A stretch of 63,684 nt of DNA, counting the filler, from Klebsormidium nitens (taxonomy: Eukaryota; Plantae; Klebsormidiophyceae), in assembly GCA_000708835.1 (NCBI GenBank). It is 3 parts of 3 records of this genome, joined end to end, with 100 filler letters (N's around TTAATTAATTAA, not from the genome) between each part and the next. Parts side by side here need not be neighbours in the genome. Positions count along the whole stretch, not along the records: positions 31,306 to 61,510 come from DF237771.1; 2 more parts are not named here. One strand, written 5' to 3'. Shown piece after piece: positions 14,001 to 61,510 of the stretch; within the stretch, counting starts at the first letter, position 1, and every line of letters begins with the position of its first letter. The notes under the pieces are model-generated. The model saw only the letters and a program-made list of their open reading frames with translations, was not told where the DNA came from and did no database searches. A program made the translations under genes and the position numbers.

Positions 14001-14414
14001 ACCCGCAGGGTTACGAAAGTTTCCTTCTTCCAATCGTAGGCAGCAAGGTTCGAAGCTCGTCTATTCGGCGCCCCTGGAAGCCGGACGTTTTCAGCCTGTC
14101 AAGGACTCACAATCGTTATCGAGGACTGAGAGATGCTTTGCTGATACACTCAGGAGGCCCGTTTAGCTTTTCAAATTGGCTCAAACACCGCACTTCCTAA
14201 TGCAGGCGATGCTGGCTACGAGTCCTCCGACAGCCAGGAACAACCGCTCGTTGACTACCGCGAGTTGGAGCGGGACAACCTGGAAGCTGTCGTCGGGCGC
14301 CTGCGCAAAAAGTACCCTAAGCTCTATGTGAAGGGCGACTTCGGGGTGGGGGAGTATGATTATTACGGATGGCAGTTTTCAGTTATCTGCCGGCCCAATC
14401 GGGATGCGTTGTAG
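11082..14414 (+). CDS. F-box protein with downstream LRR/RNI-like region, 3 exons
   Basis: Exons 11082-11298, 11664-12834 and 14206-14414 join in phase. F-box-like motif LPAEVVGKILSL...AVLGRAWRDAV, then Leu-rich repeats (LQILDLEF, LNKLWLHNLDL, LMRLKVES, CPKLMVLEI). Confidence 0.7.
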
Positions 14415-17400
14415 CGCCGAATCGTCAAAGAGTATGATTTCAAACGTTGTTATTACGGTTGGGATTTCTTGGGTGTCTGGCCGCTCCAATCTGGTTGCGT
14501 TTTGTGGTGCGAGGTTATCAAAGTTGCACGAACGCCCTCTCCAATACTGAGATGATTAGTCTACTACGGTATGATCTGATTGTGTTGCTTAGAGACTGGG
14601 AGCCACTATTTTATAGGAGATTCTGCTTTGTTGATGCGTACAGCGTTGAGTATTGTCATTGCTTCTAACTTTGGAGAAGAACGTTGGATGACCCATTTGA
14701 TTGTCTTTGTAAGGTGAACTTCGGAAATATTCAGTAGTAGTAGGAGTATAGTATCTAGAGTTTATTACGGCCAAGGTAGTTTAATCCGACGGGACATGGT
14801 TGAACAGGGGCATTGAGAATAAAAATCATGCAAGCACAATCCAAGGTTGCAACTTGCGGGCATCGCTTCAAACTCTGGGTCGAATCAAGGCTTCATTTGA
14901 CGGTCAAGTGTTTCCAATCATTCGCGACAGGTGCAACGAAGTCTAAAGGTCTGGTCTATGCCATGGGTTTCAAGTTTTTGCGGCTGTGCCGATATAGGCA
15001 TATATACAATAGGCATACACTGTGCATGAGCTGCTGGTCGGATTTGTTAGTAACATGTACCTACATGTTGATGTATGATCGAACGTACTCGTACATTGGT
15101 TGCACTGATTGTCCTTCCTAGCCCCATGCAAAATTAGTGGATAAGCATGCCATGGTCCCGAGTAGGCACCCATCTCCGTCGCATGAACATGATAGACGTT
15201 TAATGATGTGCATCTGGGCCATGATGCGCCGCCACTCAGGCTGAAAGGCTGGATATTGAACTCGGACCCGGGAATTAAGCCTGATCGGACCGTCGCCTCA
15301 TTGGCCGATTGATCCATGTGCCGCGCCCATGATGATGATCCTCAAAAATGCAATTAACTGGACGTGTTCGTATTGCATGAGGATGCATGATGTGCGTGAT
15401 CGCAGACTTAATCTACAAGTGACGGCTTCCGCAAGGGGAAGGACAAGGCCGAGTAGCGATCATGTTCTAGCATGTCCAGCCTTACCCCGTGTACTATACT
15501 ATAGGAGCATTCAATAAAACATCTAGCTCATGTTAAGTTAAAGTGGGCGTAGGCGTCACGCCGGCGGCATGGCCGAAGCGTGACGACGGCACAGGTTAGG
15601 CAAGCGAGCATCGTCCGATAGATTCAACTCGTGCTTTATTGCCGTCCGATTTCAAATGCACTCGCGAGTGCATACGCCCACTTGAAGCATGTACTAAACG
15701 TACATCGGATGGCCATGCATCCTTCAGTTCGGCACATCGACTCATAGCTAGAATAACTTGCTAGCATGCAGTTTAGGTTACTTGCATCTTCATGGACATG
15801 ACTCAAATACATGCAGCCGTAGCTAGAGCTGTAGAGTGATCAAAAACACCCATGGATCCCGGCTCGGCCGTGCTCAAACTTAGGCTGCAAATGACTCAGG
15901 GTGTGCCACGGCGTTATATATGACAATTTGGAGGCTTAGTATACTATGATACCATACATGAACGTACACGCGACCATGTTGTTCGACTCGAACGGTCGCA
16001 CTTAAGACTCCAACCGTGTACCACATGATGTTCTCTTTTCAAACGCCGTAGCCACATGGGCCATAGGCTTCCATGGCATACGTACATGGGAATAGATGTT
16101 CGAGTTTTGAACGCCTAGCTACCCTACCGAAACTCCATGTGCTAAATCCGTCCAAACCTAGATCCTGGCAACTACTTATTCCCGGGCTAATGATCCCAAA
16201 TCAGTATGCTAGCGAGGGACTACGAGCCAGCATCTTGCTGCAGAACTAGGATTGGCGCTGACTACCAGACGTCGGTTGGCAATCTCGGCAGGGATGTAGA
16301 CCGCAAAAGGCCATACTTCACACATGATTCACGAGCAATTGCGGTGTTTGGTACACATGCATCATGCCGGCCATCAAAAAACCCCTGCCCCGTACACATG
16401 ATCCAAGCTAACCTTAGTTCACAAGCAACCTATGGTGGGTATCGGCGGTCTCGATCGCGCGACGGTCCGGTCACAAATTTGAATCACCGGTGTCTCGCGT
16501 CGCGACAATTACTGTACGCGGTACTGACGACCGTGCAGACCGGTACTTGAGAATCCGGTCCGAGTTCATAAATTAGAATCTGTCTGACATTCCGATCGTC
16601 AGAAACTTCCGGAGTTTCCGGCGGTACGGTACCGATCAAGTCTGACCGTACGTGAAATTTGAAAATCATGGTTTCGATCGGAAGTTCCGACTCGAACCAC
16701 CCTAGAGTACCGCGGTACCTAACTTGAAAGGAGAGTGCAGAAGATGGAAACGGGAGTGTAGGGAATGGCGCTTTTTAGAAGCAAGCAATGGCGGCCAACT
16801 TTGCAGCCACGATGGTGCTTCTTCCGATTTGTCCTCAACATAACAAGATGTTGGAGCTTCGAAGGAGCCTTCATGACGCTCTCCCAACATTTTTTTCTGC
16901 TTGTCAGAGGTTTTTATAAGCTGCATATGGCTCTTCTTTGCGTGCCAATTTGATGCTCCTCTCAAAGTGTAAAACCTGACACTGTCTAAGAATCTCCTCA
17001 CACTTACTTACGGCCCGGCAAAATTTTTCTGAGTATTTGTACCGCCCGAGTAACATAAACCTGAGTAGCCGTGACGCGAACCGCCGGTAACACTGACGAT
17101 ATTCGATACGCGCTAAATCGATTTTGTGGCGGCCGGAGTCGGAATCGACTCGGCCGGTACCCACCATAGGTAGCTTGTGTTGATGTTTATGCAGTGCATG
17201 AATCGAGCATCCTCAATCGATCATGTTGACTCAACGCCGGCCGCAGATATCAGCATGTCCTTTTCAATGAGGTCACGCCACATACGGCCTGATTAATGAC
17301 ACAATCGTTTTGCTGGGCGGCTCAGCGCGGTCAGCTGCCCGCATGCCAACCGCGCCCGTGCAAAGGGCATCGTTTAAAGGCAGTTTGGCTGATTTACCAA

Positions 17401-17664
17401 CCCCGCGCCGCAAGTCGGAACTTATGTGTGAGGAGGCCAAGTCGGTGTGCTCGGCTGTAATGCACCATCGCATTTGAGAGTGCAGCGCATTATGTTGCGG
17501 CACACTCTCCTGCCACAGGCAACCGGCTCTGCCATTTATTTAAGAAAGGCCAACAGACTGTCAATCCGTGCGACCCTCGACGTCGGTAGGAAATCAGACC
17601 GCATCGTTCCGCACTACATGTTGCAAATGTTGGTCAATCGAATCGACAATGCGGAGCCCAACCA

Positions 17665-20600
17665 TTAGGCGGCCTCTTTCTTATACAACAGAACCTCCTT
17701 GATGTCCACGCCTTCTAAGTCCCTTACGACGTCATCGAACTGTAGGCATGGAAGCAGATTTTGAGGTTAGAACCATACAATCAGCAGATTTCCAGCTGGG
17801 CTCTGCACAATCCAGAATTTCGAAATTCGGGAGGAGTAGCTTCAAATAGAGGGTTAGTGCTCAACTTTGCCTTTGCAAGAAGCTGCGTGGATGTGATATC
17901 CACAGTTTTGCAGTTTCGCAGATTACAGTGAAGCACTACCGGCAACCGATAAAAGTTCGTAAACAACAGAACAGAGAGCAACAAGCCAGCACATGCGGGT
18001 GCACCTCTGATAGACGAACGAGAACAAAAGAAAGTCTCAACCAAGCCATCACCCTCACTGAATGAGAACCCTGCACCCCCCGCGACTTTCCCTGCCAAGT
18101 CGATCTTAAACTGGAACACGAAAATGTAGAGATGGCACCTCTTGATGCTGACGGACTGCCAACGTCAGCAGCACCCACTCACCTTCACAATGTTCCGCAC
18201 GAAGAAGTCGCCGAATCGCCGGTTGCTTTTCGTCTCTGCTACGTGGATCATGTCCTGAAGGGAAAGGCGCCATGTAAGCAGAGCTGCGACTGCCAGTCCG
18301 AACAAGCGTCTTGAAGCCAGCAAGAAACCAAAGCAGTTCCGCAAACCAAGAGGTGTGTGTAAAGTCGTAGCTCTACCAGGGTCGGTTGCAAAATCCCGTG
18401 ATCAAAGATGCCAACCCAAACGAGCGTTTCTAAGCGGCACTCTCCAGCTGCACAATTGCAACCAGACGCTTCATCTGGAGCGCTCTCAGTTGGCGCGCTT
18501 CCGTCGTCTCACAATTTAGCTCGGCTCATCGCAAAACTCAAAGAACGGCTTCAGTCCATCCTAGAATGGACATCGTGGGACAGTCTATGATGTCCCATAG
18601 ACATAATCTACTATCTATTAGGATAATATCTATCTTAGTATGGTATCTTAACAACCCGGCGACCGAGTGTCCGAGTCACCGCCCTTATGGTCGCCCAGAT
18701 GACCACGTGCATCAGAGGATAGGCAGCGACAGCCAGTCGAAACAAGTTATCTGTGTGTCGCCCGGAACTATGAGGGGGAAAAGAGCTCGTGGGGAAAGAG
18801 GAGAGTGCTCACCCCCTCGATGTAGAAGTCTAGGTCACTCGTCCGGTAGATGCTGCCGTCGACGCTGTCGACAATGTGCGTCTTGTGCTTGTACGTCAAC
18901 AGGTGCGACCTAGAGGAACACGAGGCGCGTGTAAGGAAATGATAAAAAGTTGGGACACTGCAATTGCCCAAGAGTTCCCAAGCTTGGAAAAGGCACTTGT
19001 GCGGTATGTCGTTCTTGTCGACCGAGCAGGTGCATTTAAGAGAAATGAGGCGCAATTGAAAGTGAGGAGCGTTGAGACGAACGCACAACCAGAAAGACTG
19101 GTGCTGCTTCGACTTTCGACAGTGTGAATTCCCTAAAAGCGGCATTTGAGACGGACCTTGGGAGCTTACGCCTTTCAGAACCTCGGACTCTCATCAAAAC
19201 TAACGATTGAGAACGGAGAGGAGGACAAAAGACAAAGCTGATTGAGCAGCCCACAGCCGACCTGGCAATGAGCTTGTTGGCGCCAAAAGACGGGGCAGAC
19301 TAGAAAACTTAGGAGCTCAAGCCCTTCCAGCATTGGAGACAGAGCATTGAGGAAACATCGGTGTCTAATTGTTGCCCGCACCGTTGACAGCCGCATCGGA
19401 CACGAGCAGATGCGAGCTTGGCGACGGAGATGGAACCGCCAAACTCGAATGTCCCGAAACCCCGGCTGAGTGTAGGAGGAAAACCAGAAGGCAGATCGGA
19501 GGAGAAGGAGGGAGCAAAACTGACCACCAAGGAACTTGTGCATGTTTGAAAGGTCTCCCGCTAAAACCCGCGAAGGCACCTTTGCTCTCAACTTGCGTCA
19601 AGAAATTGCGTTCCTGACTCCTCGGACTCTTCGAAAAACGGCGACATTGAAGAGAAAAGGGGAGGTTGAGGAAGAAAGGTTCAAGGAGAACATCGATGGA
19701 TTGAAAGATGTCTCACCTGACGGTCGCCTCGTCGGAGCCGACGAAGGAGGCGAGCTTGGCGACGGAGATGGTGGTGTAGAGCTTGAGGTAGGAGCGGATC
19801 TGCTGCCCGCGCTGCTGTTGCCGGACGTCCGTCAGGAAGATCTTGAGCTGCAGCCGGTACGCGTCCTGAGGAGAAAACAAGATTGTCCGAATCTAAAAAT
19901 GCTCCGAATAACCGAAAGAGTGATCAGTTCGGAGCGGTTGGAGAAGATTGACGTTTGAAGAACAGTGATGAACAAGCGGAGACGGGACCAGTTGATCCAA
20001 GCATAGGACACGTTTCGTCGCTCGTTGTTTCTAGACAAAGCGCAGATATGAATCTTGAGCTGCAGCCAATATGCGTCCTGTGGAGAAGACAAGCTTGACC
20101 TGTTTAGCAACGCTCCAATTGTAGACGAAAGTACCAACACTTCAAAGGCGTGGAAGTTGTTGGAAAGCCCTTGCAAACCGTGGGAAGCCGTTGGAAGCAG
20201 TTTGGAAGCTTTTAAAAAGCCGTTGGAAGCCGTTTGGGAGCTTTTGGAAAGCCGTTGGAAGCCGTTAGAAGCTGATGATTGAGCGGAGATGCGACCATTT
20301 CATAGCAAGCATAAAGAACATTTCATCGCTCTCTGTTCCTAGGCAAGGCTCAGCAATGGATCTTGAGCTGCGCCGTGATTAGTCCTGCAAAGAAGGCACG
20401 CGAGTGTTTACGAAGGAGATAGCTTACGACAAACGCATAGGAGATGCTCACCTGGTTGAAGTTGACGGGGGGTTCGTCCCAGTTTGGCGTGGAAGGCGTG
20501 ATGAATTTCGGGCACGCGAACGAGAAGAGCTCGTCGTATATGGCGTCCACCTCATAGCCTATCCCCTGCAGCCGCTGCAGCTTGTCGCCGTGCTTCTCCC

Positions 20601-23600
20601 GCAGCTGGCTCGACACCGTCTCCTCCACCAACTGCAGGCAACGGAACGGCGGAATGAGAACGGAACCAAGGAATCAGAGGGAACAGGCAGGGAAACAGGT
20701 GGCTGAACACCGTCTCCTCCACCAACTGCGAGAACGGAACGGCGGAATGAGAACGGAACCGCGGAAGGAATACGGAACCGCGGAATCAGAGGGGAAGAAG
20801 GAAGGGGAACAGGTGGCTCGACACCGTCTCCTCCACCAACTGCGGGCAACAGAAGGGCGGAATCAAAGCGGAACAACGAACTCATAGCAGAATAGAAATC
20901 CGGATCATTGGCTCGACACCCGTCTCCTCCATCAGATACGGGCAACGGAACGGCGGAATCAGAGCGGAACGGAAGCATCTGAGGGGGATGCAGAAGAAGT
21001 ATGTCTAGCTGACAACCATCTCCCCTCCCAACAACTGCGGGCACTAAATGGCGGAATCTGTATGGCGCCCGGGAGCCGTGCCAGAAACTTCGTCTCCTCC
21101 ACACGAGGAGTAATGGACGAAACGTGGTTAACGAGTGACAAGGGTCAGTGACAAATGCTGCTGGCTGTCTTTGGACACCCGTTGTGTTTGGCAAACAACG
21201 CGCTACAAATCTGGAAAGAGGGAAAATTGCGGCGAGGACTCATAGCGATCCTCTGCAATCGCTGTGTGAAACCATGCAGAACCGCAGAAAAAGTGTCACA
21301 AAATAAGTCAAGCAACAAGACCCCGGATATTTGACACTGATTGACGAAGCAGGTCTGAAGCGCACCTTGTTTTGTGGGCTCAGTGCGAGTGCGGTCACTA
21401 GCAGAGCGTACAGCTGCTCGTTCTTCTTCGTGATCTGGTCGTACTGCGGGGACTGTGCCAGGTACGTTTGTGTCCGTGCGATGTACACCAGAACTGCGTT
21501 GAACACCTTGATGGCGTCTACGTACCTGCGGGTTAAGGGAACAAAACGGGTTTAGAATCAGAGCAAAATGAGATGGTGCAGCGTGTCTGGGGATCGAGAC
21601 GAATTTGACATATGGCCGACTACGGGGTTGTAGGGCAGCCTTTCAGAGGCGCTTCTCAAGCACGACAGGAAGCAATAAAAGGATTGCGTTTGTCATCCGC
21701 CCAATAAGTCTATCTGACAAGGCCCTGCACAACGACAAGCTTCTGAAGATTCGATTCTGATTCAAAAGACAATCCTGAGACTGCTGTCCCAGACAGTTTG
21801 TCCAACGGCCTAAACTGAGCGCAAAGCACCTCAGGAAGAAGCTGTTCCTGACGCAAACCTTTTGCCCCCCATCCTTACCTCCGAATCATCAGATAGGCGA
21901 ATCCTGCGTAGTACATCGTCGTGATATGGCACCCGCTGACTTTCGTGAACACCCCCGGCCGACTGATATCCAACGGCTCCAAAACCTTCAGCCCCCCGTG
22001 GTAATCTCCCAGTAGGATATGCACCCGAAGAAGCCCGACGATCGAGAAATAACCGAGGACTTTGAGGACGTTGCTCCCGCCCTGGTAATCATAGCCGTCA
22101 GCCGAGGTGAACGCTGCGCGAGCGGTCTCGTTGTCGAGGAGCGCGTAGATCTGGCTCTTGTCGATCAGGGCCTGGAGGTAGTTGAGAACGCCGTACACGT
22201 TCCAGACCTGGTTCAGGGGGGGTTATGTAGAATCAGCCTCGTCTGAAATTCACTACTGCGATTGAATATTTGCTCCCGTGAAACGAAGAAGCTTGGCCCT
22301 CTGCGAGAGTCTTGTGCAAGAACGCGAATGTGACAGCAAAAAAACGCCTTCTCTAGACGACCTGCCGGAAGAGGACTTCAATTTGAATGAGGAGCCCAAA
22401 CCTTTATCCACTAAGATACTCGGAAGTCTAGCCCATCGATCTGGTCACGGCTCGTCGCCGCAACTAGTGCATAAACTGCCCCTCAAGCTCGACAGGACAG
22501 GATTTTGTGACAATTCCTCCATCTTCCGACATGCAAAACTCTCAGCTTCACAACAGTCGGCTCTTGCTACCCCGCTGGCCTGTTTCCAACTTTAAAACAA
22601 CATAGGTCACAGCCAAGATCTCTCCGCCCAGTTAAAACCTCCCTCTAAGACAGAGAGAGAAGAGATGAAGAAGGTCGAAGCAGACAGCAAATCCGGATAG
22701 CCAAGGTGAAAAGAAAGCGCAGGGTTGCACAGCGAGTCGGACCTGGTCGTACTGGCGCAGCTGCTTGAGCTCCTCCTCCGAGCGCGCCTTCATCTTGGCG
22801 CGGTACTGGCAGAAGGACTGGAACTGGTAGATGAACTCATCCACCATGTCCCACAGCCACTGGTTCGGCAGCTGCATGTTCACGTTCCCGTGCAGGATGA
22901 TCTGTACAGGAAAAAGAAGCTATGATCTTCAGTATGCTGTAAATAGGCCCTTCAGGAGGGAAGAAACGACATGAATCTGTTGATGTCTGCGTGCAGAATG
23001 AGCTGCAATGAGAAGATTGTAGCACGCCTTCACACAATTGACAAAGCAACAACTGGAATAAGATGTGGGCAGCTGCATGTTCACGTTGCCGTGCAGGATG
23101 ATCTGCGGAAGACGGGGGTGCCGTAAGATGAACTCTTGCTTTTGTAAACTCACAAAGCAACCAAACAAGCCCGTGGGGCGCGTTGGCTTTCAGATCAGAT
23201 TGATGGCCCACACACGTGCTTTTTGGAAAAGCAGGAGGGGCAGACACCAAAATGGCCCCTGCTTCATACCTGCCAGAGGACAGTTTCGAACCGACTGATG
23301 ACTCTTTTCAAACAGCAAAAAAATGTTTTTATGTGAGCAGTAATGGAAACTGGGTGCGGGCTGCTTGCAGGATGATCTGTGCGTGCATTGTAGGGTCAGG
23401 TTGCCTGCTTGCTTAGGAAAGATCGTCGGAAGTGGTGGTCGATGACTCTCGGAAAAAGCATTCGAACTGGCCTCACCGGCGGCTGTCCAATATACACGGG
23501 CTGGAAAATCTCTACCCCTCACTTGTTCAATTGGACGGGGCATTAGTCCCTCAGCATGACTTGGCTGAGGCGAAACATGAATGGAGGGGGTGGTTATCAA

Positions 23601-39552: not shown

Positions 39553-46786
<7,234 letters not shown>

Positions 46787-48180: not shown

Positions 48181-51164
48181 ATGGAAGTGGCGGAGCCCGC
48201 CGGTGGCATTCCAGTGGGGTGGACTTCTGGGCCGGTAGGGGGCGTTGCTGTAGGCACCAAGAAGAAGAAAAAGCAACAGGACGGGGGGCGTGAGGAGGTG
48301 GGTGGCAATGAAGGAGCCTCCTTTGAGAAAACACTTTTATCAGGGGCCCTTCCTGTTGTGTAGAGCTGACCATTGCAGTTCTAAGAAAAGTAGTGAGCCT
48401 TCAGGGGTGACCATGGATCCCTTCGTGCTATGCTTGTTAGCGGAATCTGAAAGGAAGTGGTGCTTCCATGATTGCGGCAGTTCACCGGCTTGGAGTGCTG
48501 CGACGCTCCTTCCGGGCATTCGTAGATCATTTTTCTGATTGTTCAGCTTCTGGGCAGTCTACTATCCTCCTTCTGGCTTCCCAATCAAGTACCAGTGCCC
48601 ATGGTTTGTCAACGGAAGGCCTTCAAAAGGGGGCTATCACTACCTTTGAAATTTTTATTTGGCTATCACAATAGACGCAGGCTGAGATCTAATTTGACGG
48701 AAAGTCAAGGTTCAGAAGCGTGCAAGTGCATGGCGCTGTCTGGTCGGGCTCGCCCTGCATAGACCAGACCGGTGAGCAACTGTACTCTTGGACCGATATC
48801 AGATGCCATGATAACCTCTTCGAAGTTAGCTTATTTCTGCCGCATGTTTTCCCAGGGCCACCACCTACCCCAGAAGCGCGTTAAGGACGTCGAACTGGTG
48901 GTGCCCATAGCTTATGGCACCATATCCTTCTGGCTGGGAAAGAGGGCGACGGAGACGAAGGCCTACCAGTGGGCCGTGTACGTTCGAGCTGCCAACAATG
49001 AGGACCTGTCTGCGGTGATCAAGAAAGTGGTGTTCAGCTTGCATCCCAGTTTCGAGAATCCAACGCGAGGTGAGGATTTTCCTTTCATGAATGTCCTTCT
49101 CGACAAGTAGAAGTGCATGAGTCAGCATTCATCAGCGTTTAAAGTACAAGCGTGGACTTTGTAGACATTAGTCACGTCTACTTTATTGCTTTCTGGTGCG
49201 GGAGAACAGAGCATTGGACTTGACTCTTCGGAACGTGAACTTGCAAGTGGTAGAAACGGGAATATTTCCCCCCTAACGGTCTCCTTGGCTCTGGATGACT
49301 GGCAATTGCTTCTTTCTACAAAATAGTGCGAGCTCGCCGTCCCCTTCCCCTTCTCAGTGCTTGCCAAAGCACTGTGATCCATGCGTCAACCCGAAGCAAG
49401 CCGTATGCCGTCTTCCTTGATCTTCCAGGGGTCACCCTTTTGCTGCGGTGCCTCGCCATCCGTTTCGTTCAAGCATTTGCCCCACCACATCTTTTGCAGC
49501 ATGGCAGACCCCGGCCATTTGACCAGCTGTCTTTACTCCCAGAAGAGCTTTCTATTCGACACGTTGTCTGAAAAACATTTTCTGTGGCAGTCGTCGACAA
49601 GTCCCCGTTCGAGCTGTCGGAGTGCGGGTGGGGCGAGTTCGAAATCACGCTCACGATCCACTTTCACAGCGACGCAACCGACCGACCAGCGGAACTGACA
49701 CACCATCTCAAGCTGTACCCGGAAGCGGAGGCGGCTCCCAATCCGAAGCGACCGGTAATTGCCGTAAAGTTTTGACCGCTCTTGCACGTTCATACAAGCG
49801 TCCAGAAGGCTTATGACCCTCTTCCCGCTGTCACGACCACTTCTGCAATTTGCGAAACGGGCGTTCACACCCATTGGCTCGCGATTCCATTCCGGAGGCG
49901 AACGTCCTGATTTGGTGTCTGGTTTGGATCCTGGCGGCCTTGCATTGGGCAAAACGTTGTTGGGCTATTAGGCAGCGGAAGGAAACTATGGACTCTGAGA
50001 TCAGACTGAGCCTCTATGTGTCCATGCCAAAAGCCGTTGCAGCTGCTGACGTGGATCGTCTCCACCCATTGATTGAGCGCCACAGTCTATCGTGTTGGAC
50101 GAGAAACGCTGCTTGCCGCCAGCCCGACCCGCCCACACGCTCGAGGCTAATTGCAACGGAAGAGTGTGGCGTTCCTTCTGGTTATAATGTTTTGAAGCAG
50201 GCTCGGAAAGTCGAAGGTACTGAGATACTTGACTAAGTTCGTACTCACCATTATGTTTCCACCTTCAGAGTCGATCCGAAACTTCTTTGCAGGTTGTTTC
50301 CGAGCACTACGACGAGGTTGTCTTCCCGGACCCGGGGGAGGCCTTCTTCGAGCGGGTCAAAGACAGCCCCGCCGTAACCGTCTCGGTAACCGGCGACGGC
50401 GCGCCCCCCTCCGCCATCGAAGCAGCCACGCGGCCGCAGATCGAGCGGGCGGGCACGCCTCCGGTTCCGGACGCTTGCCCAGCGGACGGAACTCTGGCCA
50501 TGGTAGCGGGAAAGGGGGACGGCAGCACGCTGAACCATCCGCTCCGGCCTTTCTGTGAGGATACACTCTTTCTTGCACCTGGTTTGGATTCGTTCCGTTC
50601 GTATAATTGTTGACCGTTCATGCGAGTCGGAAGAGTGTGGGTTGTGTCCTTCGTTTTTGAGACGAGGGTTTGCTGCAAGTCCTTCAGACCGTTGAAGGGG
50701 GCGAAGGGGTTCGAGTCTTCTGAAGAAATGCTCGTATGCAAACCAACCAATCTGTAGACTGGCAACGGACTCCGGGTTCTCTGCACCTGGCGGGCCGAAA
50801 AGAAGACTGTTCATAAACCGCACGTATGTGCGTATGGTTTTCGAGTGTGGTTTTGAATCTTCCGCCTTTTCATGAGTTCCGTTTGCCTTAACCTGTCTTC
50901 GGTATGTTGGAGTTGAGGGCTTGCGCAGAAAGCAGTACAGCAGTAGTGAGTCCGACAACCTTGCTTATACGGAGACTGACTAAGGCCAGCGTCGCATGCT
51001 CTGCAGATCTGAAGCACTCAGATGCGAGCGAGCTTCGAAAGCTAGCCGAGGCAAAGGAGCAAGTCGCGGCTCGAATGGAAAAGTTGGAGAACGCTGTTGT
51101 CGCAGTCGAAGAGGAGATTGCTCAGCTGCGAAGCCAGCTGGTTGACGGTCCTGTGTCGGTGTAA
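48181..51164 (+). CDS. YAF9: YEATS-domain protein (YAF9/GAS41/TAF14 family), about 5 exons
   Basis: Probable exons 48181-48297 (tentative), 48856-49069, 49591-49754, 50293-50554, 51007-51164. Motifs [65 protein letters not shown]-terminal coiled coil. Confidence 0.9.
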
Positions 51165-52786
51165 TAGTCTGCATCGAAGGAGGTTCTGTGGAGCCAGACG
51201 GTGTATGCTTCAGTCCAAAAGTCGGTAGCTCTTGAATTTCGAAAAGCACAACATTGAACTGCCATTGGGGGACGTCTACTTCTCATGGTCTGAGGCGATT
51301 CTCACCCAAGAGAGAGTCGCACATGAGCAGATCATGTTGGGCTCAGGAATATGCAGGACAACTCAGACGGTTGCAATCTGAGAAGTTCGACCTGCCATGA
51401 TTTGGTCAGTGGATACAGAACACGAATGCAACTGGCACCCTCGTGCATTCGAGATGCATTTAGCAGTGAGAATGGCCGTGCGGGGCGCTCGTCATGTATT
51501 TTTACCGGATGCAGGACTGTTTACATTGTGCCTATCATGTCGGAAGATGACAAGGAAATGCGTACTTGTAGGTATACTAGCATGCCTCACTGCTTGGAGA
51601 ATATATACGCGTACATGAGCTAGTACGTTGCATGTACCATCACTTACCTATACTTGATCGTATGACAAGAATTGCTCGGTAGTGCGTTCTATGCATCGGC
51701 ATAACGAGCAATCCCCTCCACATCCCCTCTTGCAGCACAAACCAGCTGGAGGTTCGCGTATAGAGGGTATATAGAAGCATTGCGCACCAACTTTGAATAC
51801 GGGAAAGATGCAGTTCACAGCACTTGCAATTCTGGCATCATTAAGTTAAGTTCAGCCCGTCGGGCAAACGAGCGCGGGCGGCCGGCGCGCCTGAGTAGGG
51901 ACGTCTAAGGAATTCTGATCGAACGGTGCCCAGCACGATTGCGACATACCGTAACCAAGATGTAGGTACCTATCCTACCATGCTGCACGCCGCACGGTAC
52001 GTACCGGAAAGCCCGGAATCTTAGGGACTCGTCTCTAGCCGGTGCTTACCGGATGCAAACGGTACCTTGAGGTACCTACCGCTGTGTCAGACATTCAAAT
52101 TGAACGATTTAGATGCAGCTCTTGACATCCAACTTCATGTTTTCAACGGCTTCAGACCTTGAATCGGCGCATTGCTCAATGCTTGCGCGGTCCACGTCAC
52201 ACGAGTAAGCCGTACCGGTACGGAGCTTGATGTGCTGTACAGCTTGCATGCACAATTTGTCGAGTCGCAGCTTGCAAGCCGGACAGATGGCACCCTCCAC
52301 GTGCGCAAGCCTGAGCAGAGCAAGCAGGAGAAGGGCTTTGGCATTTATGAGCAGGAGAGGCTTTGCATGGCCGCCGTTTCTGTGAGGGAGGAGGCAAAGT
52401 GTGGACCATGGTGCTCCAGGCTGGGCCGTTGCTCTGACAACTCTCACAGAAGGCCCGCGGCTCTAGCTGACCTTCTCTTCCAAGCTTTTGAAGCTCTGTG
52501 CTCCCCTCTCTTTGTGGAACCATGATGCAGGAAGAAGCTGAACAAGGACTTGCTGAAGCTTGCAAGCTGGATTGACCAGCTCCTGTGTCTGGTAAAGGTT
52601 GTAGCTTGTGGTGATCAAGAAAAGACCCCAGGATTACCTTCTGTAGATCCAAGGAAGCAAGGCATTTTCTGCGTAATGCAAGGAACGGGAGGTTTAGAGC
52701 GCAGGTCAATGTCTTGAGGACAGCTGCATTGTGGCTGCCTCAAGAGCCGGACCTTACCTCAGTGGAGGATAGCTCTGCCTCAGGCC

Positions 52787-55700
52787 ATGCTCGCGAGTCT
52801 GCACGGGTCACCGCAGCAGTCTCAGGGATGGGATGCATTCCATCCCGGCACCCTTAACCTCTCCTTTCCCTATGGTCACATCGAGCCTCTGAAGCAATGG
52901 CAGCCAAAGGCTTACGCAAAAAGATTGGAGGATGTGAAGCCTGACAAGAAAAAGGGAGCCAGCAGAATGCAGGTCAAGCGCGAGGCACAGAAGGCCATGC
53001 TGGCCAGGTGCAAATCGAACAACTCTGCAGGCCAGTCCTTCGCAATGCTGCCGCCCCCTTACGCTCCCCTGGGGTTTGTCGGCAGTTCCACAGGGGACGG
53101 GGCCCAATGTGACTCCTTGAAGCGCAAGTATGATCAGGCTTTGCCAGCATTGGATGAGCAGCTCTCAAGCAAGCGCTCCCTAGTGGAGAGCGCGTGGCCA
53201 GTGGAGTTAGCAGGCTTCGCTGCGGGTCAGAGCGTGTGGCGGTTGCGGGGTGGAGGGCAGGCAGCGCAGGATGAGGCCTCAGAGGATCCCCCTGCAGAGG
53301 GGGGGACCCAGAATCAGGCGGAAGCTGAGGGGAGCCAGCAGGCAGGCCAGCGGGTAGACGCATTGATCTCTGAGGTTGCAAGTATGATGGAGAGTGCACA
53401 GAGGGGGGGACAAGCAAGTGAGGTTATGCTCCGCCTCAACAGGTTGGAAAGCATCCCCTCTCTCCCGCGGTTCAACAGTCTAGAGCTGGCAGACGAGATG
53501 TTTGCAGACATCCTCAAGTGGGATCTTCCCAAGGGAGAAGAGCGTACAGTGGAGGTGAAGGAGGGGGAGGTTGGGAGGACAAGGGGGGGCGGAGTGGAGA
53601 GCGACGATGCGCAGGTGGAGGAGTTTCTGAAGTCCCTGGACCCCGCTTTGGCAAACCGGGAGCCGGTCGCGATCCAGGATCAGTTGCAGAAGTCGGCTGC
53701 GGAGGGAAAAGATGGGGCCGAGGGGAAGCAGCGCGCGGGGGCGAGGCCTGTATCCGTGCGGGGGGGTGCGAAAGATTTAGGCGATGCTGGAGAGAACAAG
53801 TCGGAGGGTACAGCGTCGGAGCAGGCTTCGCAAGATCAGGCTGCAGCGGGGGAAGGGTTGAAACACTCTGGCAGCGGCGAAGCCGCTCAGCCATCAAAGC
53901 TGCAGAGCGCAGAGGCAGTCCCTGGGAAGCAGTCCGGTGGAAAGCCCGAGGTGCAGCCCAAGCAGGGCCCTGCCATCTCACAAAAGCCGATGGTGCGGTC
54001 CCCAAGGGCGGGAGAGGAGAAACCTAGGCAGCTAGTGCGTCCCAGTCTGGACATCCTTGCGCAGGCGTCCGCCAGTTTCGGTCCCACGAGCCCTGTAGCC
54101 AGCAAGGACAGCCTGGAGTCCCCAGAGTCACCGATCCTGAGCAGCCTGGGGGGGGGGCCGCGGCGCCCCAAGCTCACCCCCCCGCAGCAGGAGAAGTTGC
54201 GGGGGTTTGCAGCCAAGGTGCACTGGAATTGGGGGGCGGCGGAGGGGACTGGCGAGGCGCGCCAGCTGTGTGCTGAGTTGGGGATTGACATGAGGCAGAT
54301 GAAGCGTTGGGTGGAAAGTCACCGACCCAAGGACGTTGCGCCGCCGCCTCCTCAGGCGGTGCCGTTCATGGGGTGGGGGGTGCCACCAGGGGTGGGGATG
54401 ATGAATCCAGCCTACATGTCCTATATGGCAGGAAGCCCGATGGCTTTTCCGGGGGCGTGGCCTGGCATGCCCCGCCCCCCCCTGGGGGATGGGTCGTGGG
54501 GAGGGGGGCCACCCATGGGCCCCATGGGCCAGCCGTTCAACCCCACAATGCAGGCGCCGTTTACTCAGCCGTTGCTTGGGCCCAGTTTCCCGGGACCGCC
54601 GTTCTTGCCGGGGGGTTTTGCCAGCACAGGGTTTGGTGGGGGAGCGCCAGGGGGGCCTCTGAGCGCCCCAGCGGCCACCCCCCTGAATGTGGATGAGAAT
54701 CAAGAGTTGGTGGCATCAGCTGAGGCGCTGGGGAAGCTGTTGGGCGACCGGGTGAACACCATCCCCCCTGAAAAGTTGAAGGAGATCCTGGCGGCCTGGA
54801 TGGCGCACAAGCGCAACAAGCGCGAGCAGGAAACAGTCCCGGCAGCCCGGGAGGCGCCACTTTCCGGCGCGGGGGGGACCAAGCGCAAGGAGCCCGAGCC
54901 CCTAGCGCACCCCCCTGCCGATGAGCCGTCGGAGGGTAGCCTGTTGCAGTTTTCGATCCCGTCACTTGAGCGGGGGCTCTCCAACGCGCCCTCGATCTCG
55001 ACCCTGCTAGCTGAGGAACTAGCGTCGGCAGCTGCGGAGGACGGGGGGCTTGGCAAAGATGGCGATGGAGCCCCGGGGGGGGCGTTTAAGGGGCAGGGGG
55101 CGAGCCGGGATCCCTCGCTGAGCGTGCTCTTGCAGGAGATTGGGGGGGCGATGGAAGAAGCACCGAAGCGGACGATGGGACCGCTCGAGAGGCAGGTGTT
55201 TGGCGTGGACGAGGACAATATGCAGATGGGGCCAGCGCCGGAGTCAGGTGAAGTTCCTGTGAAGTTGTGGGCTTAAGCTGTTGCGTGTGATTGGTTAATT
55301 TGGTGATGTGGCATAGTCTGCTCTGATTGCTGCAGCTTCATCTCTCCAGCAGGCCGCGCTTTTGCCTCCTGCAAAGTAGCTGCAACTTAGAAGGGTTGTT
55401 GATTGCCAATTAGATCGAAGGTCTGGCAAAACATTGCACAGCCAGCACTTTGTTAAGGCAAACCTTGTAGACAGGAGGTCTTGGAGGTCTTCGGTATCCA
55501 TTCTCTTCATTCCTCTTCCTCTTCAATCAGGCATGGAACCGCCAGGATGTGTGCCCGTGCTTCAAGGTTTTGAAGTGTCGTACTTTTTTCATTGGTGTTC
55601 CTTGGGAACACCAAAGTCTGCTGTATGATCCTTGACTGCTGAGAATTGACATCCAAACCTTGACCTTTGTGCAGGCGATGACGAATCCGCATCCTCTTCC

Positions 55701-58700
55701 GACGAACCCTCCGAGCGGCGGCCCGGGTTGCGCCCCCGGTCAAAGCGGCGCCGGTTTGCCGAGTCTTCCGCTGAGGAGGAAGAAGAGGAGCCGGAGGAGC
55801 CGCAGTCGGAGGAAAACGAAGAACCGGGGGTGGATGAAGAAGTGTTTCCCCATGATCCGGAGGGACGCGCAGAGGGGGGCCAGTGGCAGCTTGGTACAGG
55901 GCTTGAGGATCGGAGGCTGCCCCCCCCGCTAGGTTATCAGGGCCACGTGGGACAGGTGGGTCTCGAGACTGGTTGAAGTAGATGGTGGTAGGGCATCAAA
56001 CGATCCACGCCGTTCTGGATGGTATGATGAGGAGCTTGTGTGATCAGAATGGCTCTGTGCTACCTGGCAAGAACGACGCTCTTGTCATTGAGACAAGGCT
56101 TGGGGAGATAGAGAGGAGTTGTGCGGGTCTCATTCTTTGACCTTTTGTGGACTTGCAGACGGGGATACGGGCTGTCCTTTTTGAGAAGGCGCTGACGGCC
56201 AGTGACACGAGCCACCTCGGTCGGTGGGTGCTCCCCAAGGTAAGGACGTAGACTCGATTCTACATTGTCTCTTTGCATTCTACACAGTCAAATTTTACAC
56301 AGTCGATCTTTCTTCGAGTCGTGCGGGCACAGGAACTTGTCTTTGATGGAGTCAATGGCTTCGAAGCCAGCGCCTGCATCTGTTGACGTGTTTACCGACC
56401 AAAAAGTCGAGGGAGGTGCATATATACTAGATTCGATTCTACCTTTGATTGCTTCTGAGATCTCTTTGCAGCTTGTCCCCCCTAGCACAGAGTGTCCGCC
56501 TTTTCTGCAAACCGTGGACGAACCAACGAGCATCAGCAAAGAATCTCATTGGGTACTTGTCCCTGCAGCTGGCTGCTGAGCGCTACATGCCGTACATGGA
56601 ACACAGGGACGGGACGTTCATGCTGGTGGAGGATAGCAAGGGCGGCCGCTGGTGCTGCAAGTACAGGTGAGCCGTGCCGAGGTCCCAGTACTCTGTAGGG
56701 CTGGGCTGTTTGATATTGGCAGAAGGGTTTGCTTGACTGTGTGTTTCCTTCGTTTGGTCATCCCTGAAGCGTCTAGTGGGTCTGCTACGGAGAGATCAAA
56801 CGCTCATCATTGATCAACGGATTTCTTGCAGGTGGTGGCCAAACAACAAGAGCAAGATGTATGTCCTCGAGCAAACGGGTGAGGTGCACTTCCGTTTCGG
56901 TTTTTCTGAGTTCCAGGACTCTGTGACTCATTTCGAGGAAACCAAGCTGCTCAGGTGCTTGGGTTTTGGAAGCGAGACGGTGAGGATTTTGTAGAAGATG
57001 TGCTCCGTGCGTATAGCGTATTCCTGTTCTCAGATGACTTTTGTGCCAAGTTGATGCCATAGGCTGCGATAGATTGACTGCCGTTATCTGCAGGCGAATC
57101 CGGGTGGTCGCATATGCAGAACCTTGCTCAGCTTTTGAAAGCTGTCCTGATTCGCGTCCTCATTTTGTGCAGGCGACATTGTGAAGCATTTCAAGTTGCA
57201 CCCGGGCGACACCATCCACTTCTGCCAGTCTGTAGAAGGCCACCTGGTGAGCGATTGTGTCGACAGTGGCTCAGCGATTGTGTCAATACTGGCTCAGTCT
57301 GCGCATCTGTGGCGAACGCCTCCGCAAAATTGACCTTTTATCCTTGTACTTGTGTGGCTGCTCATCGGGCAATGGGCCCCCTTGTCATAGTCTCCGCAGT
57401 TTCGCCTGCCTCCTCGTTAAGTCTCCGCTTCCTGCCGCAGATGATATACGAGCAGAAGAAGAACAGCAAGCAAAGGCCCCCCGTCGCCAGCGCGGCGTCC
57501 CCTGCGCCCCTCCCCAAGCGCTACGCCAAGCGTGTGCCCATCGAGCCAAAACCCTCCCCCAAGGGTTCCCGTAAGCAGCTGAAGGCCCCCAAAGCGCCCC
57601 GTTCCCCGCCGCCCCCAAAAGCGGCGTACAAGCTCCCGAGCCCCTTCGCTCGGGTCTCAACGCGAGGCCGCACGATTCGCCCCTCGAGCCGCCTCCGCCG
57701 AGGGGGGGACGGGAACCCCGAGAACGGCTCCCCCGCTTTGGTTTATAACGCATCTGCCGGACAGGGCCTTGCGGGGCGGCTTGTTTCGCACGAGTGGCGC
57801 GGGTCGGCGATGCTCTCACCAGGGGGGTCCGGGAATGCGGCTTCGGACACCCCCGAAGTGGGCGTCGACCCGTGGGGCGCCGACGAGCTGCTCGGCCGGG
57901 GGGAGGGCACCGCCCAGATCAACGAGCTGGCCCGCCACTTTTTGCAGCAGACGAACCCCGGGGGAGCCGGTCGGGGGGGTCTCTCCGCAGGCGTTCCACG
58001 CCCCCTGGCGCGGACTGGCTCGGCAGATTTGGCGAACGAGATTTTGGCGCTGACAAACAGCGGCCGGGAGGTCGGGCCGCGCGAGTTGAGCCCCCTTGGG
58101 GCGCCCTCGCGGCAGGGGAGCTTGACACCAGTCCTGCAGCGGACTAAGAGCAGCGAGAGCCTGCCGTTCTCTGTGTCAAACTTCCCGCCCATCCCGACGG
58201 GCCTCGAAAGCCTCAGCCGCAGCAGCAGTTTGAATCGAACGGCGAGCCTGGCGCGCGCGGGCAGCCTGCTGAGCCGGCTGCCGTCGGATCTGGAGGCACT
58301 GAGCAAGATGGACAACTTCCCGTCGTTCGACTTTGCGGCCACGCCGCCCTTGCCCGTGCGTACACTTCTTTTGTGTTCTGAAGCTCTTGTTCTATCTTAC
58401 TCAATTTCCTTCCAAGTGCATCGTTCAGTTTGTGCGACTCCTCGGCGGCTCTTTTTGTTCAGCTTTGGTTTGAGCTGTCGGGGGAAGGGATAGAAGCGAG
58501 AGCTTGTTTCTAGGTACTGGCAGTCGAGCGGGACCAGGCATCCAGCGGCTCTTTAGAGTTTCTCGTGTTGGCTTCAGTTTGCTTTAGCAGCCTCGAGCGA
58601 CTCAGTTTTTGCCCTCGCGTCGTATTCCTTGCAAGTCGGCCAATTGGACCAACAAGAGAAGCGCCGCTGTTCCAGTCTTGAGAGGATCGTGGTCTTCGTT

Positions 58701-58809
58701 GCAGGTCGAGTCAGCATTTCAACCATACGGGGGCACTCCCGGCCGCCAGGCGAATGCGGCCGTGGCAACCGCAGGCGATGCGGCCCAAAATCGGCGGAGA
58801 GCCGGATGA
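52787..58809 (+). CDS. Transcription factor with a ZF-HD-class homeodomain and an ABI3/LAV-class B3 domain
   Basis: Exons join in phase: 52787-55247, 55675-55955, 56159-56239, 56569-56666, 56832-56878, 57173-57246, 57441-58355, 58705-58809. Homeobox 54161-54331 (RPKLTPPQQEKLRGFAAKVHW...LCAELGIDMRQMKRWVESH). B3: LFEKALTASDTSHLGRWVLPK...[33 protein letters not shown]. The true start may lie in an upstream exon. Confidence 0.8.
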
Positions 58810-61510
58810 ACGCGTCAAGAAAGACAGCGGAACTTGTGCATACAGGTGGGCCGGGACGCCCTTACAGTTTTAGAGCACGCTTAAGGACAGGACGGATCAG
58901 CAGTCGGATGCTTAGAATGCAGGCGAAGTGGCCCCCCTCAGTCGATAGACGGGCTTGCATCCCTGCTCAGCGGTAAGGGACCTGAGCGCGGGTTCCCGTC
59001 ACTTCCAGATGCGGAGAGTGGGCGCTGAAGGTGCTATTGCATGTGGGGAAACCACTTGATCATGTTTATTTTTAGTTGCTAGGAGATCAGCGAGCCTCGA
59101 GCGCGCGCAAGCTACGGAGGCCTTTTGAGCGGGTCGTGTTCAAACCTACGGGAGCGGAAGAACATGTACCCTGGCTGAGCCCAGTTTTGACCACATCTTT
59201 GTGTCCTCATTCCTCCTTCTTTGGGGGTACCATGTTGCAAAGTATACTTCCCAGTCATGTCATGTCGAGGGTGCAATTGCTGAACTGATTCGCAGCCTAA
59301 ACATTGACGTGCCCCATCTGGATGAAACATGTCAAAGATTTGCAGGAGTGTTACAAACCGTATAGAAGACAATACCAGCGTAGCAGTTGCTTTAGCTATC
59401 TAACATGCTGCAGACATCCTTAGTGCCCTCGTCAATGACAGACTTTGAGTTCTGACATATGATGGCGTTTGCATGGTGTGCCGCGTACATGCTTCTGCTC
59501 GTATGGTAAAGCCCCTTCAACAACATTGGAAAGCATGTACTAAGGTCACCGTAGGTGCCCTTGCTTGCAACCCTATCTAATGATGGTTTCTTTTCGTAAT
59601 GCCGTAGCCAGTGCGCCCACAGGCTTCTCATGATCAAGCTCCATTGATTGTTTCTCAATTCGTAAGCGACTTGTGATTTCAGGAACCTATCGCAGCAGAG
59701 TCATGCGCCACATGATCGATTTATCTTATCCCCAGCAAAGGTGGCCCACATCTCGCCCACATGCGACCGGGCTATATCGAAATGGCACACAAAGTGCGGT
59801 CATGTTACCTACCAACTACCATTGCTTAAACTGATTGGCTCCTTTTTTCCTGCGGTTGTAATTCTGAGCATTCAACATATCTTTCAGGGTTATCTGAAAT
59901 GCTTCATAATTGCACCCGTTTTTAGATCAAGCTATAACAATTGCGAGGAGAAGCTAGCAAAAGCCACAGCTGCTCACGGCTCGTTCTGGCCAAAGGCCGG
60001 GGTCCGAGTTCGTTGCTTGTGTTGCTAGCTTGCCTTCAACGTGATGAATGAATCATGCAGACCACTGCCAGATGACCTCTTTTCGTTGTCTAAGGCCGCA
60101 CGGTAGCATTGAATCGCGGCCTGAGAGGGAAATAGGACGAGGGCCGAGGAGAAAGTTCTAGTACAGCCTACAAACGATTCTGGCGGATTGCACCTCGATT
60201 TTGTGTCTCGTAGCAGGCTTTCTATTGGCCAAACATGACCACGTGCCTGAAGGGGGCAAATCTTCCTGTGGTCAAGTTACAAGTCTGGACTCTGTACTGA
60301 TTGAAACAGGGTTTAACAAAGGGCAGCGTGCTCCAAAGGAATTTCAAAAACGACGCTGCCCTTGGACACAGCATACTTCGTGCCACAGGCTCATCGACCG
60401 TGGAAGCAATATTCACTAGGCGATAAACCCCAGATTAAAGCAGAAGAGAGTAAAGCTAACCGTTTGCAAACGAGCAGCAAGTGGAATCTGGACTCTGAAG
60501 AAGGGGGCCCCAGCTACGTGCTTCAGTCCCGCCAAACAGCGAGCGCAATGAGGCGAGCGTAAGCTTCCGCAAATGCCGGACGCTCGCTTTTGACGTCACA
60601 AACGAGCGTTAAACGTCACAAACGAGCGTCCGCTTTTTGCGGAATTTTAGCCTGGTCGCCGAGCAATTGCAGTTTGCGGCAAGGTTAAACCTCGTAACCA
60701 ATGCTGACGTAAGCATATGGGTCGGGACTCGGAAGACAGGCTCGCGGGCGTATCGAGCGGAGCCGCCCGGATTTAACATAGATATGCCGAGACTCATGGC
60801 ATGGCGAGAGGGCGATGAACGTCCGATATATGATCCGAAGAGTTTTGAGCAATGCGGCAGACTTGACAAGACTTGACGATGATCAGGCGATGCTGCGCTG
60901 GACACGATTAATATACTACCATCCGAGGCTATATACGTCGAAGATATCGTGGCAGGCTTACACCATGGATGCATGGATCACATGGATGATCCGTTTTATG
61001 AATGATCCATTTCAACCTTTGCCCACAAAACCTGAATCCAATATTATCAAATCTAAAATTAAACCGTCAATTTAGTAGTTCAGTAACTTTGAGTGACAAT
61101 TTCACTAAGTCACTACCGTGTGACCGCCGGGGTCCCACCGGGGTGTGACCGTGACATATTGAACATATGCCAAATATGTTTAAGAACCTGATGCAGCACT
61201 GCAGCAATTGAATTGCATGTGAGCAGGGATGCATGATTTCCAATCATACAACTTTTATGTGCTTGCATATACGTGCCGATGTGCGTTTCGGATGCTGGCA
61301 TGGGCCCATGGTACCATGGTACAGCTAGTAAGCTATGGTGGATGATTGAAAGTCAAAAATTACTTTGATAGACCTTTAATATGCTTGCCAACCAGCAATT
61401 CGATTGCACCTCGAAACCCCTCTCGAGTGCCAATACGGTCAAATGGACACTCGAGCCGAGCTTTGTAACGATTACGACTGGTTAAGCCTAACCTCGTTCT
61501 CGACAGGATT

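Follow-up and report, generated by a model that had tools for sequence, protein, structure and literature searches.

A Klebsormidium nitens gene joins a ZF-HD-like homeodomain to a LAV-type B3 domain

Structure and transcription of the gene

The window analyzed here is a stretch of 63,684 nucleotides (filler included) from the alga Klebsormidium nitens (GenBank assembly GCA_000708835.1), and the gene under study lies on its plus strand at 52787-58809, in the part derived from DF237771.1. The gene consists of eight exons that join into one open frame of 4062 nt (1353 codons plus the stop codon) and encode a homeodomain, whose nearest known class is ZF-HD/PLINC, followed by a B3 domain of the LAV type (Table 1). 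An in-frame joining of eight exons had been proposed in the initial annotation, and we found all eight in their places within a single open frame. All seven introns are bounded by GT..AG, each with a ..gcag acceptor. Exon 1 starts at the first in-frame ATG downstream of a stop codon at 52715-52717, and another in-frame stop codon (55274-55276) is located 27 nt past the exon-1 donor. Exon 2 lacks an in-frame Met from which a separate B3 protein could be translated.

A search of sequencing runs showed that 20 runs in nine studies contain the gene, and contigs from four runs of four different studies were aligned to 52850-58849. The results showed that the introns (427, 203, 329, 165, 294, 194, and 349 nt) were removed exactly, with 0 mismatches, and that all seven exon junctions were present in spliced contigs of these four runs. 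In run X7, a single contig (record 18, 3648 nt) spans 53646-58849, from upstream of the homeobox through every junction and past the stop codon, while in runs X1, X3, and X4 one contig covers the 5′ untranslated region and exons 1-4. The spliced contigs begin 447 nt or more before the ATG and extend at least 400 nt into the 3′ untranslated region. Junctions 55247/55675 and 55955/56159, which the initial annotation had singled out for checking by complementary DNA (cDNA), were both found in the spliced contigs of the four runs without mismatches. A transcript ending at the 55276 stop, also considered there, was not what we observed: the contigs splice from 55247 to 55675, the depth over intron 1 was zero in all four runs, and no contig ended at the 55274 stop. 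Introns 3, 5, and 7 were retained only in minor unspliced contigs of low depth. These results show that the homeodomain and B3 exons are parts of one spliced gene.

Table 1. Exons and protein features of the homeodomain-B3 gene (window positions; aa, amino acids)
Feature	Position	Strand	Content
Exon 1	52787-55247	+	aa 1-820 plus 1 nt; donor CAG|gtgaag
Exon 2	55675-55955	+	aa 821-914; basic RPRSKRRRF (55731-55757), resembling a nuclear localization signal (NLS), then acidic Glu-rich tract
Exon 3	56159-56239	+	start of the B3 domain (..VLFEKALTASDTSHLGRWVLPK)
Exon 4	56569-56666	+	middle of the B3 domain, ends ..RWCCKY + R (beta4 strand; K64, R66)
Exon 5	56832-56878	+	LAV DNA-contact loop of the B3 domain
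Exon 6	57173-57246	+	C-terminal part of the B3 domain
Exon 7	57441-58355	+	final B3 residues, then Pro/Ser/Ala-rich tail
Exon 8	58705-58809	+	stop codon 58807-58809
Motif a	53447-53527	+	aa 221-247; acidic/hydrophobic block ..SLELADEMFADILKWDL
Homeodomain	54161-54331	+	aa 459-515; basic N-terminal arm, Trp48, Arg53, Glu50/Ser51
Motif c	54707-54826	+	aa 641-680; helical-looking block; second-clade counterpart ..ADNLRQVLGRKLKDFDP.KV..
B3 domain	56171-57461	+	aa 919-1021, spread over five exons
C-terminal block	58179-58355	+	aa 1261-1319, 59 aa, ..RSSSLNRTASLARAGS..DNFPSFDF..

Runs of 6-8 G are unusually frequent in exon 1, such as the GGGGGGG at 53401, 53584, 53760, and 54150. These runs encode Gly-Gly stretches and could be prone to assembly errors; the transcript contigs match the genome at every base.

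Family members and conservation

The gene had first been treated as a singleton, and we found instead that it belongs to a conserved multi-member family present in at least two classes of streptophyte algae. P0001, an open reading frame (ORF) on the metagenome contig L001, was the only close protein in a collection of 5.8 billion and is 58-64% identical to exon 1. When exon 1 and exon 7 were searched against proteins by word index, the matches were all metagenome ORFs from close relatives, and in neither length range was there an annotated protein of the source organism. The window protein is also missing from the collection containing the K. nitens proteome. The tetranucleotide signature correlates at r 0.86-0.91 with Klebsormidium-type contigs and at 0.67 with Closterium; this composition and the relatives suggest Klebsormidiophyceae. 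At the loci L001 and L011, all eight exons are collinear with those of the window, and the introns have diverged. Identity is 86-97% in the B3 exons (exon 4, 97% in L001; exon 6, 92% in both) and 81-84% in exon 7; exon 2 is conserved in both loci, and the intron-1 donor has the same position and codon phase in L001.

At L003, L004, L005, L006, L007, and L008, a homeodomain ORF likewise precedes LAV-type B3 exons that lie on the same strand. Among the relatives whose contigs were read, all show this arrangement, namely two further close relatives, four members of a second clade (one of them a K. nitens locus), and Closterium. L003 and L007 come from one Logan run and L008 from another, and L005 is a contig of the Joint Genome Institute. 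L004 is a further K. nitens locus (DF237797.1) that represents a second clade, and its annotated model, P0002 (524 aa), ends ahead of three B3 exons that the annotation lacks. L006 comes from Closterium psl complex NIES-68, in which the homeodomain part is annotated as the hypothetical protein CLOM_g7920 (P0009) and a separate 698-aa PF02362 gene lies 174 bp downstream. In many of the relatives called as ORFs, the conserved '..DP.KV' is directly followed by junk sequence, as expected for read-through of a splice donor. Because the pairing of the two domains is found in both Klebsormidium and Closterium, sequence comparison indicates that the family predates the split of Klebsormidiophyceae and Zygnematophyceae, and the same comparison indicates at least two to three paralogous clades in Klebsormidium-type genomes.

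Motif a, the homeodomain, and motif c are common to all clades. Between the window protein and P0001, motif a (aa 221-240) is 100% identical, motif c is identical at 40 of 40 residues, and the homeodomain is 70-75% identical. Motif c, the best conserved part of exon 1, belongs to no known family and has no match in PDB or Pfam; motif a is a possible activation or interaction motif. The C-terminal block of 59 aa is 100% identical in L011, against only some 62% for exon 1. Within the block, RxxS/T sites (RSSS, RTAS, RAGS) are clustered, and its end, DNFPSFDF, is acidic/aromatic; the RxxS/T sites may be phospho-sites, and the block may serve as a phospho-regulated docking or activation motif.

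The homeodomain is nearest to the ZF-HD class

The homeobox proposed in the initial annotation maps exactly to 54161-54331. That annotation had also considered that a homeobox hidden Markov model (HMM) might fail to match; the NCBIfam model TIGR01565 (homeobox domain, ZF-HD class) did match, with E values of 1.2e-8 to 5.4e-10 over profile positions 4-56 of 58, though the general Pfam Homeodomain model did not. The TIGR01565 match covered positions 4-56 of 58 in all ten of the ten family members. When the single homeodomain sequence was searched against PDB, the best two matches were the Arabidopsis ZF-HD homeodomains 1WH7 (1.3e-4) and 1WH5 (0.011). With a profile of ten family members (alignment A2), the ZF-HD structures were matched at 8e-6 and 4.3e-5, and other homeodomains at 0.05 or weaker. 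We then ran an exhaustive phmmer search with the homeodomain against 1.84 billion representative proteins (E <= 1e-3), which matched 15 proteins. Nine of them are family members without a Pfam domain, and four are bona fide ZF-HD-class proteins, one of which carries the ZF-HD zinc finger; a Pfam B3 domain was found in the gene models of 0 of the 15. A feature search of the ESM Atlas gave no usable match, and a scan of metagenome contigs with the homeodomain alignment confirmed nothing.

AlphaFold2 modeled the homeodomain with a predicted local distance difference test (pLDDT) score of 71 from the single sequence and 81 from alignment A2, and these models predict that a three-helix homeodomain fold is present, with helices at 10-22, 34-43, and 47-57 and a short helix in the long helix 1-2 loop. 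Foldseek placed 1wh7 first, and all of its top 50 matches were homeodomains, with E-values of only about 0.1-0.2 because the domain is small; VIA-align gave Z 7.0-7.6 over 53-60 residues, that is, over whole homeodomains. The family shares the landmarks of ZF-HD homeodomains, namely the Trp in the loop, the Cys before helix 2, and K.W in helix 3. By HMM, PDB sequence search, and fold, the nearest known class of the homeodomain is ZF-HD/PLINC.

Helix 3 of the window copy reads W-V-E-S-H-R, which gives Glu50/Ser51, and the near-invariant Asn51 is missing. Trp48, Arg53, Lys55, and the basic N-terminal arm are retained, and seven homeodomain columns are invariant across clades that are about 40% identical. 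Asn51 is kept in P0002-P0006, P0011, and P0012, the second clade having Ser50/Asn51. The dimerization zinc finger of ZF-HD proteins (PF04770/TIGR01566) was not found on exon 1 even at E <= 10, and exon 1 contains only 3 Cys in 820 aa. The initial designation of the homeodomain as ZF-HD-type therefore holds as far as the nearest class is concerned; a model score under the cutoff, the lack of a zinc finger, and Ser in place of Asn51 keep it from holding in full.

The B3 domain is of the LAV type

Searched against PDB with phmmer, exon 3 matched the B3 domain of VAL1 best (0.0066), followed by TEM1, RAV1, LEC2, and NGA1, and all seven of its seven matches were B3 domains. The ORF containing exon 5 matched only LEC2 (6.5e-5), FUS3 (5.8e-4), and VAL1 (0.06). 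In Closterium, exons 3 and 4 are fused, and this piece is 62% identical to that of the window. The fused exon matched Pfam B3 (PF02362) over positions 1-52 with an E value of 7.2e-6, and its PDB matches ranked VAL1 (1.8e-11) ahead of FUS3 and NGA1, which were about equal, then LEC2, then RAV1/TEM1, with ARF far behind. The fused second-half B3 exons of relatives gave weak Pfam B3 matches at positions 54-90.

The LAV loop, WPNNKS.MY..E.TGD, can be read directly from exons 5 and 6 of the window. The N-terminal half of the domain (LFEK.L.ASD) is VAL-like, and AFL-like features appear in the WPNNKS..TGD loop. Numbered as by Jia et al. (PMC8136769), the beta4 triad of the window protein is K64, R66, and P69; in the second clade and Closterium, the strand reads R-Y-R-F-W-P and the triad is R64, R66, and P69. 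The window B3 domain is thus assigned by its sequence to the LAV type, as initially annotated, with LEC2, FUS3, and VAL1 as the only PDB matches at the WPNNKS loop. We found no PHD or zf-CW domain with Pfam in any exon and no EAR motif (LxLxL/DLNxxP) in the gene model, and membership in the VAL group was rejected for lack of PHD, CW, and EAR.

Several relatives carry repeated pieces of the B3 exons. In L003 (7084-7760), the WPNNKS-loop exon occurs in four tandem copies (7084-7143, 7273-7338, 7464-7529, and 7635-7760), only the last of which continues into the rest of the B3 domain; these are either exon duplications or pseudo-exons. L007 has two copies of the same exon (13813-13860 and 13949-14068). 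In L006 (14475-14892), two copies of the second part of the first B3 exon (FLPHVESKEGILIIVEDSIGGQWCFRYR) lie about 330 bp from each other; a short-period repeat separates the FLPHVESKEGILIIVEDSIGGQWCFRYR copies, and both of its strands translate to proline/histidine/threonine-rich units.

Neighbouring genes

Upstream in the window, on the minus strand (40211-43818), lies a gene for an SnRK1/AMPK-type kinase with Pkinase (1.9e-32), UBA, and adenylate-sensor C-terminal domains. Its ORF at 43207-43818 holds a near-duplicate of '..FDDEN.PNLFKK.KVGLC..', which resembles a local tandem duplication covering the end of an exon and the start of an intron. Between the kinase and homeodomain-B3 genes, a YEATS exon (PF03366, 1.9e-11) on the plus strand at 48772-49110 marks a GAS41/YAF9-like gene. 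At L004, the flanks (3901-8175, 15664-20176, and 21701-22066) encode a Prim-Pol/D5_N/DUF5832 protein (1125 aa), a DEAD/ResIII helicase, and a ribonucleotide reductase large subunit, a gene set reminiscent of insertions of giant viruses (nucleocytoplasmic large DNA viruses, NCLDV). In L005 (1-5500), the second-clade paralogue has retrotransposon ORFs (RVT_1, zf-CCHC) on its upstream side, and an RVT_1 ORF lies near the end of L010.

Proposed function and alternative explanations

We consider it highly probable that this one gene encodes a nuclear transcription factor of 1353 aa that pairs a ZF-HD-like homeodomain with a LAV B3 domain. The family is best read as a new architecture of known domains that streptophyte algae have conserved and annotation has overlooked. 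From the N-terminus, the protein would be built of acidic/hydrophobic motifs, the homeodomain, a Pro/Gly-rich linker, motif c, the NLS-like stretch with its acidic tract, the LAV B3 domain, and a Ser/Pro-rich tail that carries the very conserved, probably phosphorylated block. The basic RPRSKRRRF stretch of exon 2 points to a nuclear location. By analogy with LAV B3 domains, the B3 domain would anchor the protein on RY/Sph-like (CATGCA) elements, and under the scheme of Jia et al. (PMC8136769) its K64, R66, and P69 would predict moderate rather than maximal affinity. The homeodomain might add a second, non-canonical DNA contact or a protein-protein surface. Glu50/Ser51 would weaken canonical DNA reading in the window copy, while proteins of the second clade, with Ser50/Asn51, could bind in a truly bipartite way, as AP2+B3 does in RAV. 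The dual DNA-binding regulator of the initial annotation is therefore a weaker proposal than it was made to be for the window copy, and is more plausible for the paralogous clade that keeps Asn51. A link to ABI3-type desiccation/ABA control, which the initial annotation saw as possible, is conjectural and likewise weaker than stated there, in a protein whose B3 domain mixes VAL-like and AFL-like features. The retained basic arm, Trp48, Arg53, and the seven invariant columns argue for a functional homeodomain.

A number of observations weigh against this reading or narrow it. The labeling of the runs as RNA is a guess, and we take them to be cDNA because introns are removed precisely at GT..AG; the evidence for a single transcript belongs to the window locus, and not to the paralogues or Closterium. 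The TIGR01565 scores of 34.8-39.1 bits are under the curated cutoff of 57.45 bits, genuine ZF-HD proteins scoring 125-164 bits on this model, and the Pfam Homeodomain model found nothing on exon 1 of the window copy. Position 51 is Ser in the window copy and P0001 and Ala in Closterium, and the replacement of Asn51 by Ser makes DNA binding by the window homeodomain doubtful. The window B3 domain was examined exon by exon and is divided among five exons of 7-32 residues each, pieces too short for Pfam, which matched none of them singly; exons 4 and 6 alone gave only chance matches to PDB with phmmer, and in the loop a Lys takes the place of the Arg found in other LAV domains (NKSKMY versus NKSRMY).

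Other explanations were weighed as well. The homeodomain gene could end at the 55274 stop and be followed by an adjacent B3 gene, the joined contigs being products of read-through or chimeras of assembly; the in-frame stop only 27 nt after the exon-1 donor would fit this, as would the separate or truncated genes called in the Closterium and K. nitens annotations. Against it stand the junction of exons 1 and 2, which is a precise, frame-keeping GT..AG splice in four independent runs with intron 1 uncovered, the absence of an in-frame start codon from exon 2, the conservation of the intron-1 donor in L001, and the recurrence of the homeodomain/B3 pairing at every locus examined. On this RNA and comparative evidence, we rejected two adjacent genes as extremely improbable. 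That the homeodomain resembles the ZF-HD class by chance, or by convergence of a generic helix-turn-helix, is suggested by the score under the curated cutoff, by weak HTH_29 and transposase-HTH matches that also appear, and by the Foldseek E-values of about 0.1-0.2. This too is very unlikely, since the model aligns over its full length (4-56 of 58) in 10 of 10 members, the ZF-HD-specific landmarks (loop Trp, Cys before helix 2, K.W) are common to the family, and ZF-HD proteins are the next matches among 1.84 billion proteins. A further explanation is a homeodomain that has become a degenerate relic, a protein-protein module that does not read DNA and leaves the B3 domain as the only DNA-binding domain. 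Glu50/Ser51 in the window copy and P0001 and Ala51 in Closterium, with Asn51 kept only in the second clade, agree with such a relic, and so do the lower conservation of the homeodomain (70-75%) than of motif c (100%) between the window protein and P0001 and the failure of Pfam Homeodomain on the window copy. However, the basic N-terminal arm, Trp48, Arg53, Lys55, and the seven invariant columns are kept, the fold is predicted with a pLDDT of 81, and the domain has been retained since before Klebsormidium and Closterium split. We regard a relic as plausible, if short of probable.

Possible relation to ABI3 and ZF-HD origins

The homeodomain-LAV B3 proteins might be the ancestral streptophyte form of ABI3/VP1, with COAR/B1 as a decayed homeodomain plus motif c, or the donor of the ZF-HD/PLINC homeodomain; we put this forward tentatively and think it unlikely. 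In the form that concerns ABI3 itself, to which we give equally little credence, the family would be a pre-land-plant ABI3/VP1, in which the homeodomain and/or motif c would be the counterpart of the COAR (B1/B2) region, and the basic exon-2 stretch that of B2. The protein runs from an acidic N-terminus through a conserved helical region, a basic stretch, and the LAV B3 domain to a tail, an order parallel to A1-B1-B2-B3, and members of the family occur in Zygnematophyceae, which are sister to the land plants. ABI3 B1 may loosely resemble motif c and helix 3. RYRFWPNNKSR, which we take to be identical to beta4 and the loop of ABI3, is the sequence in the second clade and Closterium. Their R64, R66, and P69 are the ABI3 triad of PMC8136769. 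However, surveys report no AFL genes in charophytes (PMC5379062), the exhaustive phmmer search with the homeodomain matched no land-plant ABI3 or VAL protein at E <= 1e-3, and the N-terminal half of the B3 domain is nearer to VAL1 than to AFL domains. If either origin were true, the beginnings of two plant-specific transcription factor families would be tied to one algal gene family, which would also supply the missing RY-binding factor of Klebsormidium.

Significance

B3 and ZF-HD are textbook transcription factor families of the plant lineage, and their early history is known mostly from domain-rule classifiers applied to annotated proteomes. The family described here shows that a LAV-type B3 domain was already within a complex multi-domain protein in streptophyte algae. 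Pfam-based rules miss its homeodomain partner, as the Pfam Homeodomain model does not match, and neither protein set of the two annotated genomes that were examined reveals the architecture, the gene being truncated in K. nitens and split in Closterium. The initial annotation knew of no family with both domains, and we likewise found no annotated protein or paper with the combination; full-text literature searches (ZF-HD/B3/Zygnematophyceae; ABI3/B1/homeodomain/algae) returned no description of a homeodomain-B3 architecture. The combination thus appears to be undescribed, largely because the gene models are truncated or split and Pfam Homeodomain misses the domain.

LAV/ABI3-HSL-type B3 domains have been reported in chlorophytes and charophytes, with no AFL sequences there (PMC5379062; PMC11685440), and one study classed charophyte 'B3-ABI3' domains but did not report them (PMC6797205). 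In K. nitens, Tounosu et al. counted nine proteins with a Pfam B3 domain and observed an enrichment of RY motifs in auxin-induced promoters, and the binder of the RY motif in K. nitens was not identified (PMC10272232). The family is a concrete candidate for the RY-motif binder sought in that study, and it gives a hypothesis for the source of the ABI3 N-terminal region or of the ZF-HD homeodomain.

Comparison with known systems

With the ZF-HD/PLINC homeodomains (1WH5, 1WH7), the window protein shares the three-helix homeodomain with its lengthened helix 1-2 loop, a loop Trp, a Cys that precedes helix 2, and K.W in helix 3. ZF-HD proteins are short, have the zinc finger, and lack B3, whereas the window protein has 1353 aa, a B3 domain, no finger, and Ser for Asn51. 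With the AFL branch (ABI3/VP1, FUS3, LEC2), it shares the WPNNKS.MY..E.TGD loop, and with ABI3 also a long N-terminal exon and a B3 domain split over small exons. It differs from the AFL proteins in its homeodomain, the VAL-like N-terminal half of its B3 domain, the Lys in NKS(R)MY, and the lack of demonstrated A1/B1/B2 (COAR) regions.

VAL/HSI2 proteins have in common with it the first half of the B3 domain, which is closest to VAL1, and Pro69. Unlike them, the window protein has no PHD-like, CW, or EAR part, and its loop after WPNN is of the AFL type (TGD). The RAV proteins (AP2+B3), including the characterized KnRAV of K. nitens, offer a precedent for a B3 domain joined to a second DNA-binding domain, for a bipartite site, and for such a protein in a streptophyte alga. 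They differ in that the partner is AP2, the RAV B3 domain reads CACCTG/CCTG and not RY, and the loop has another signature.

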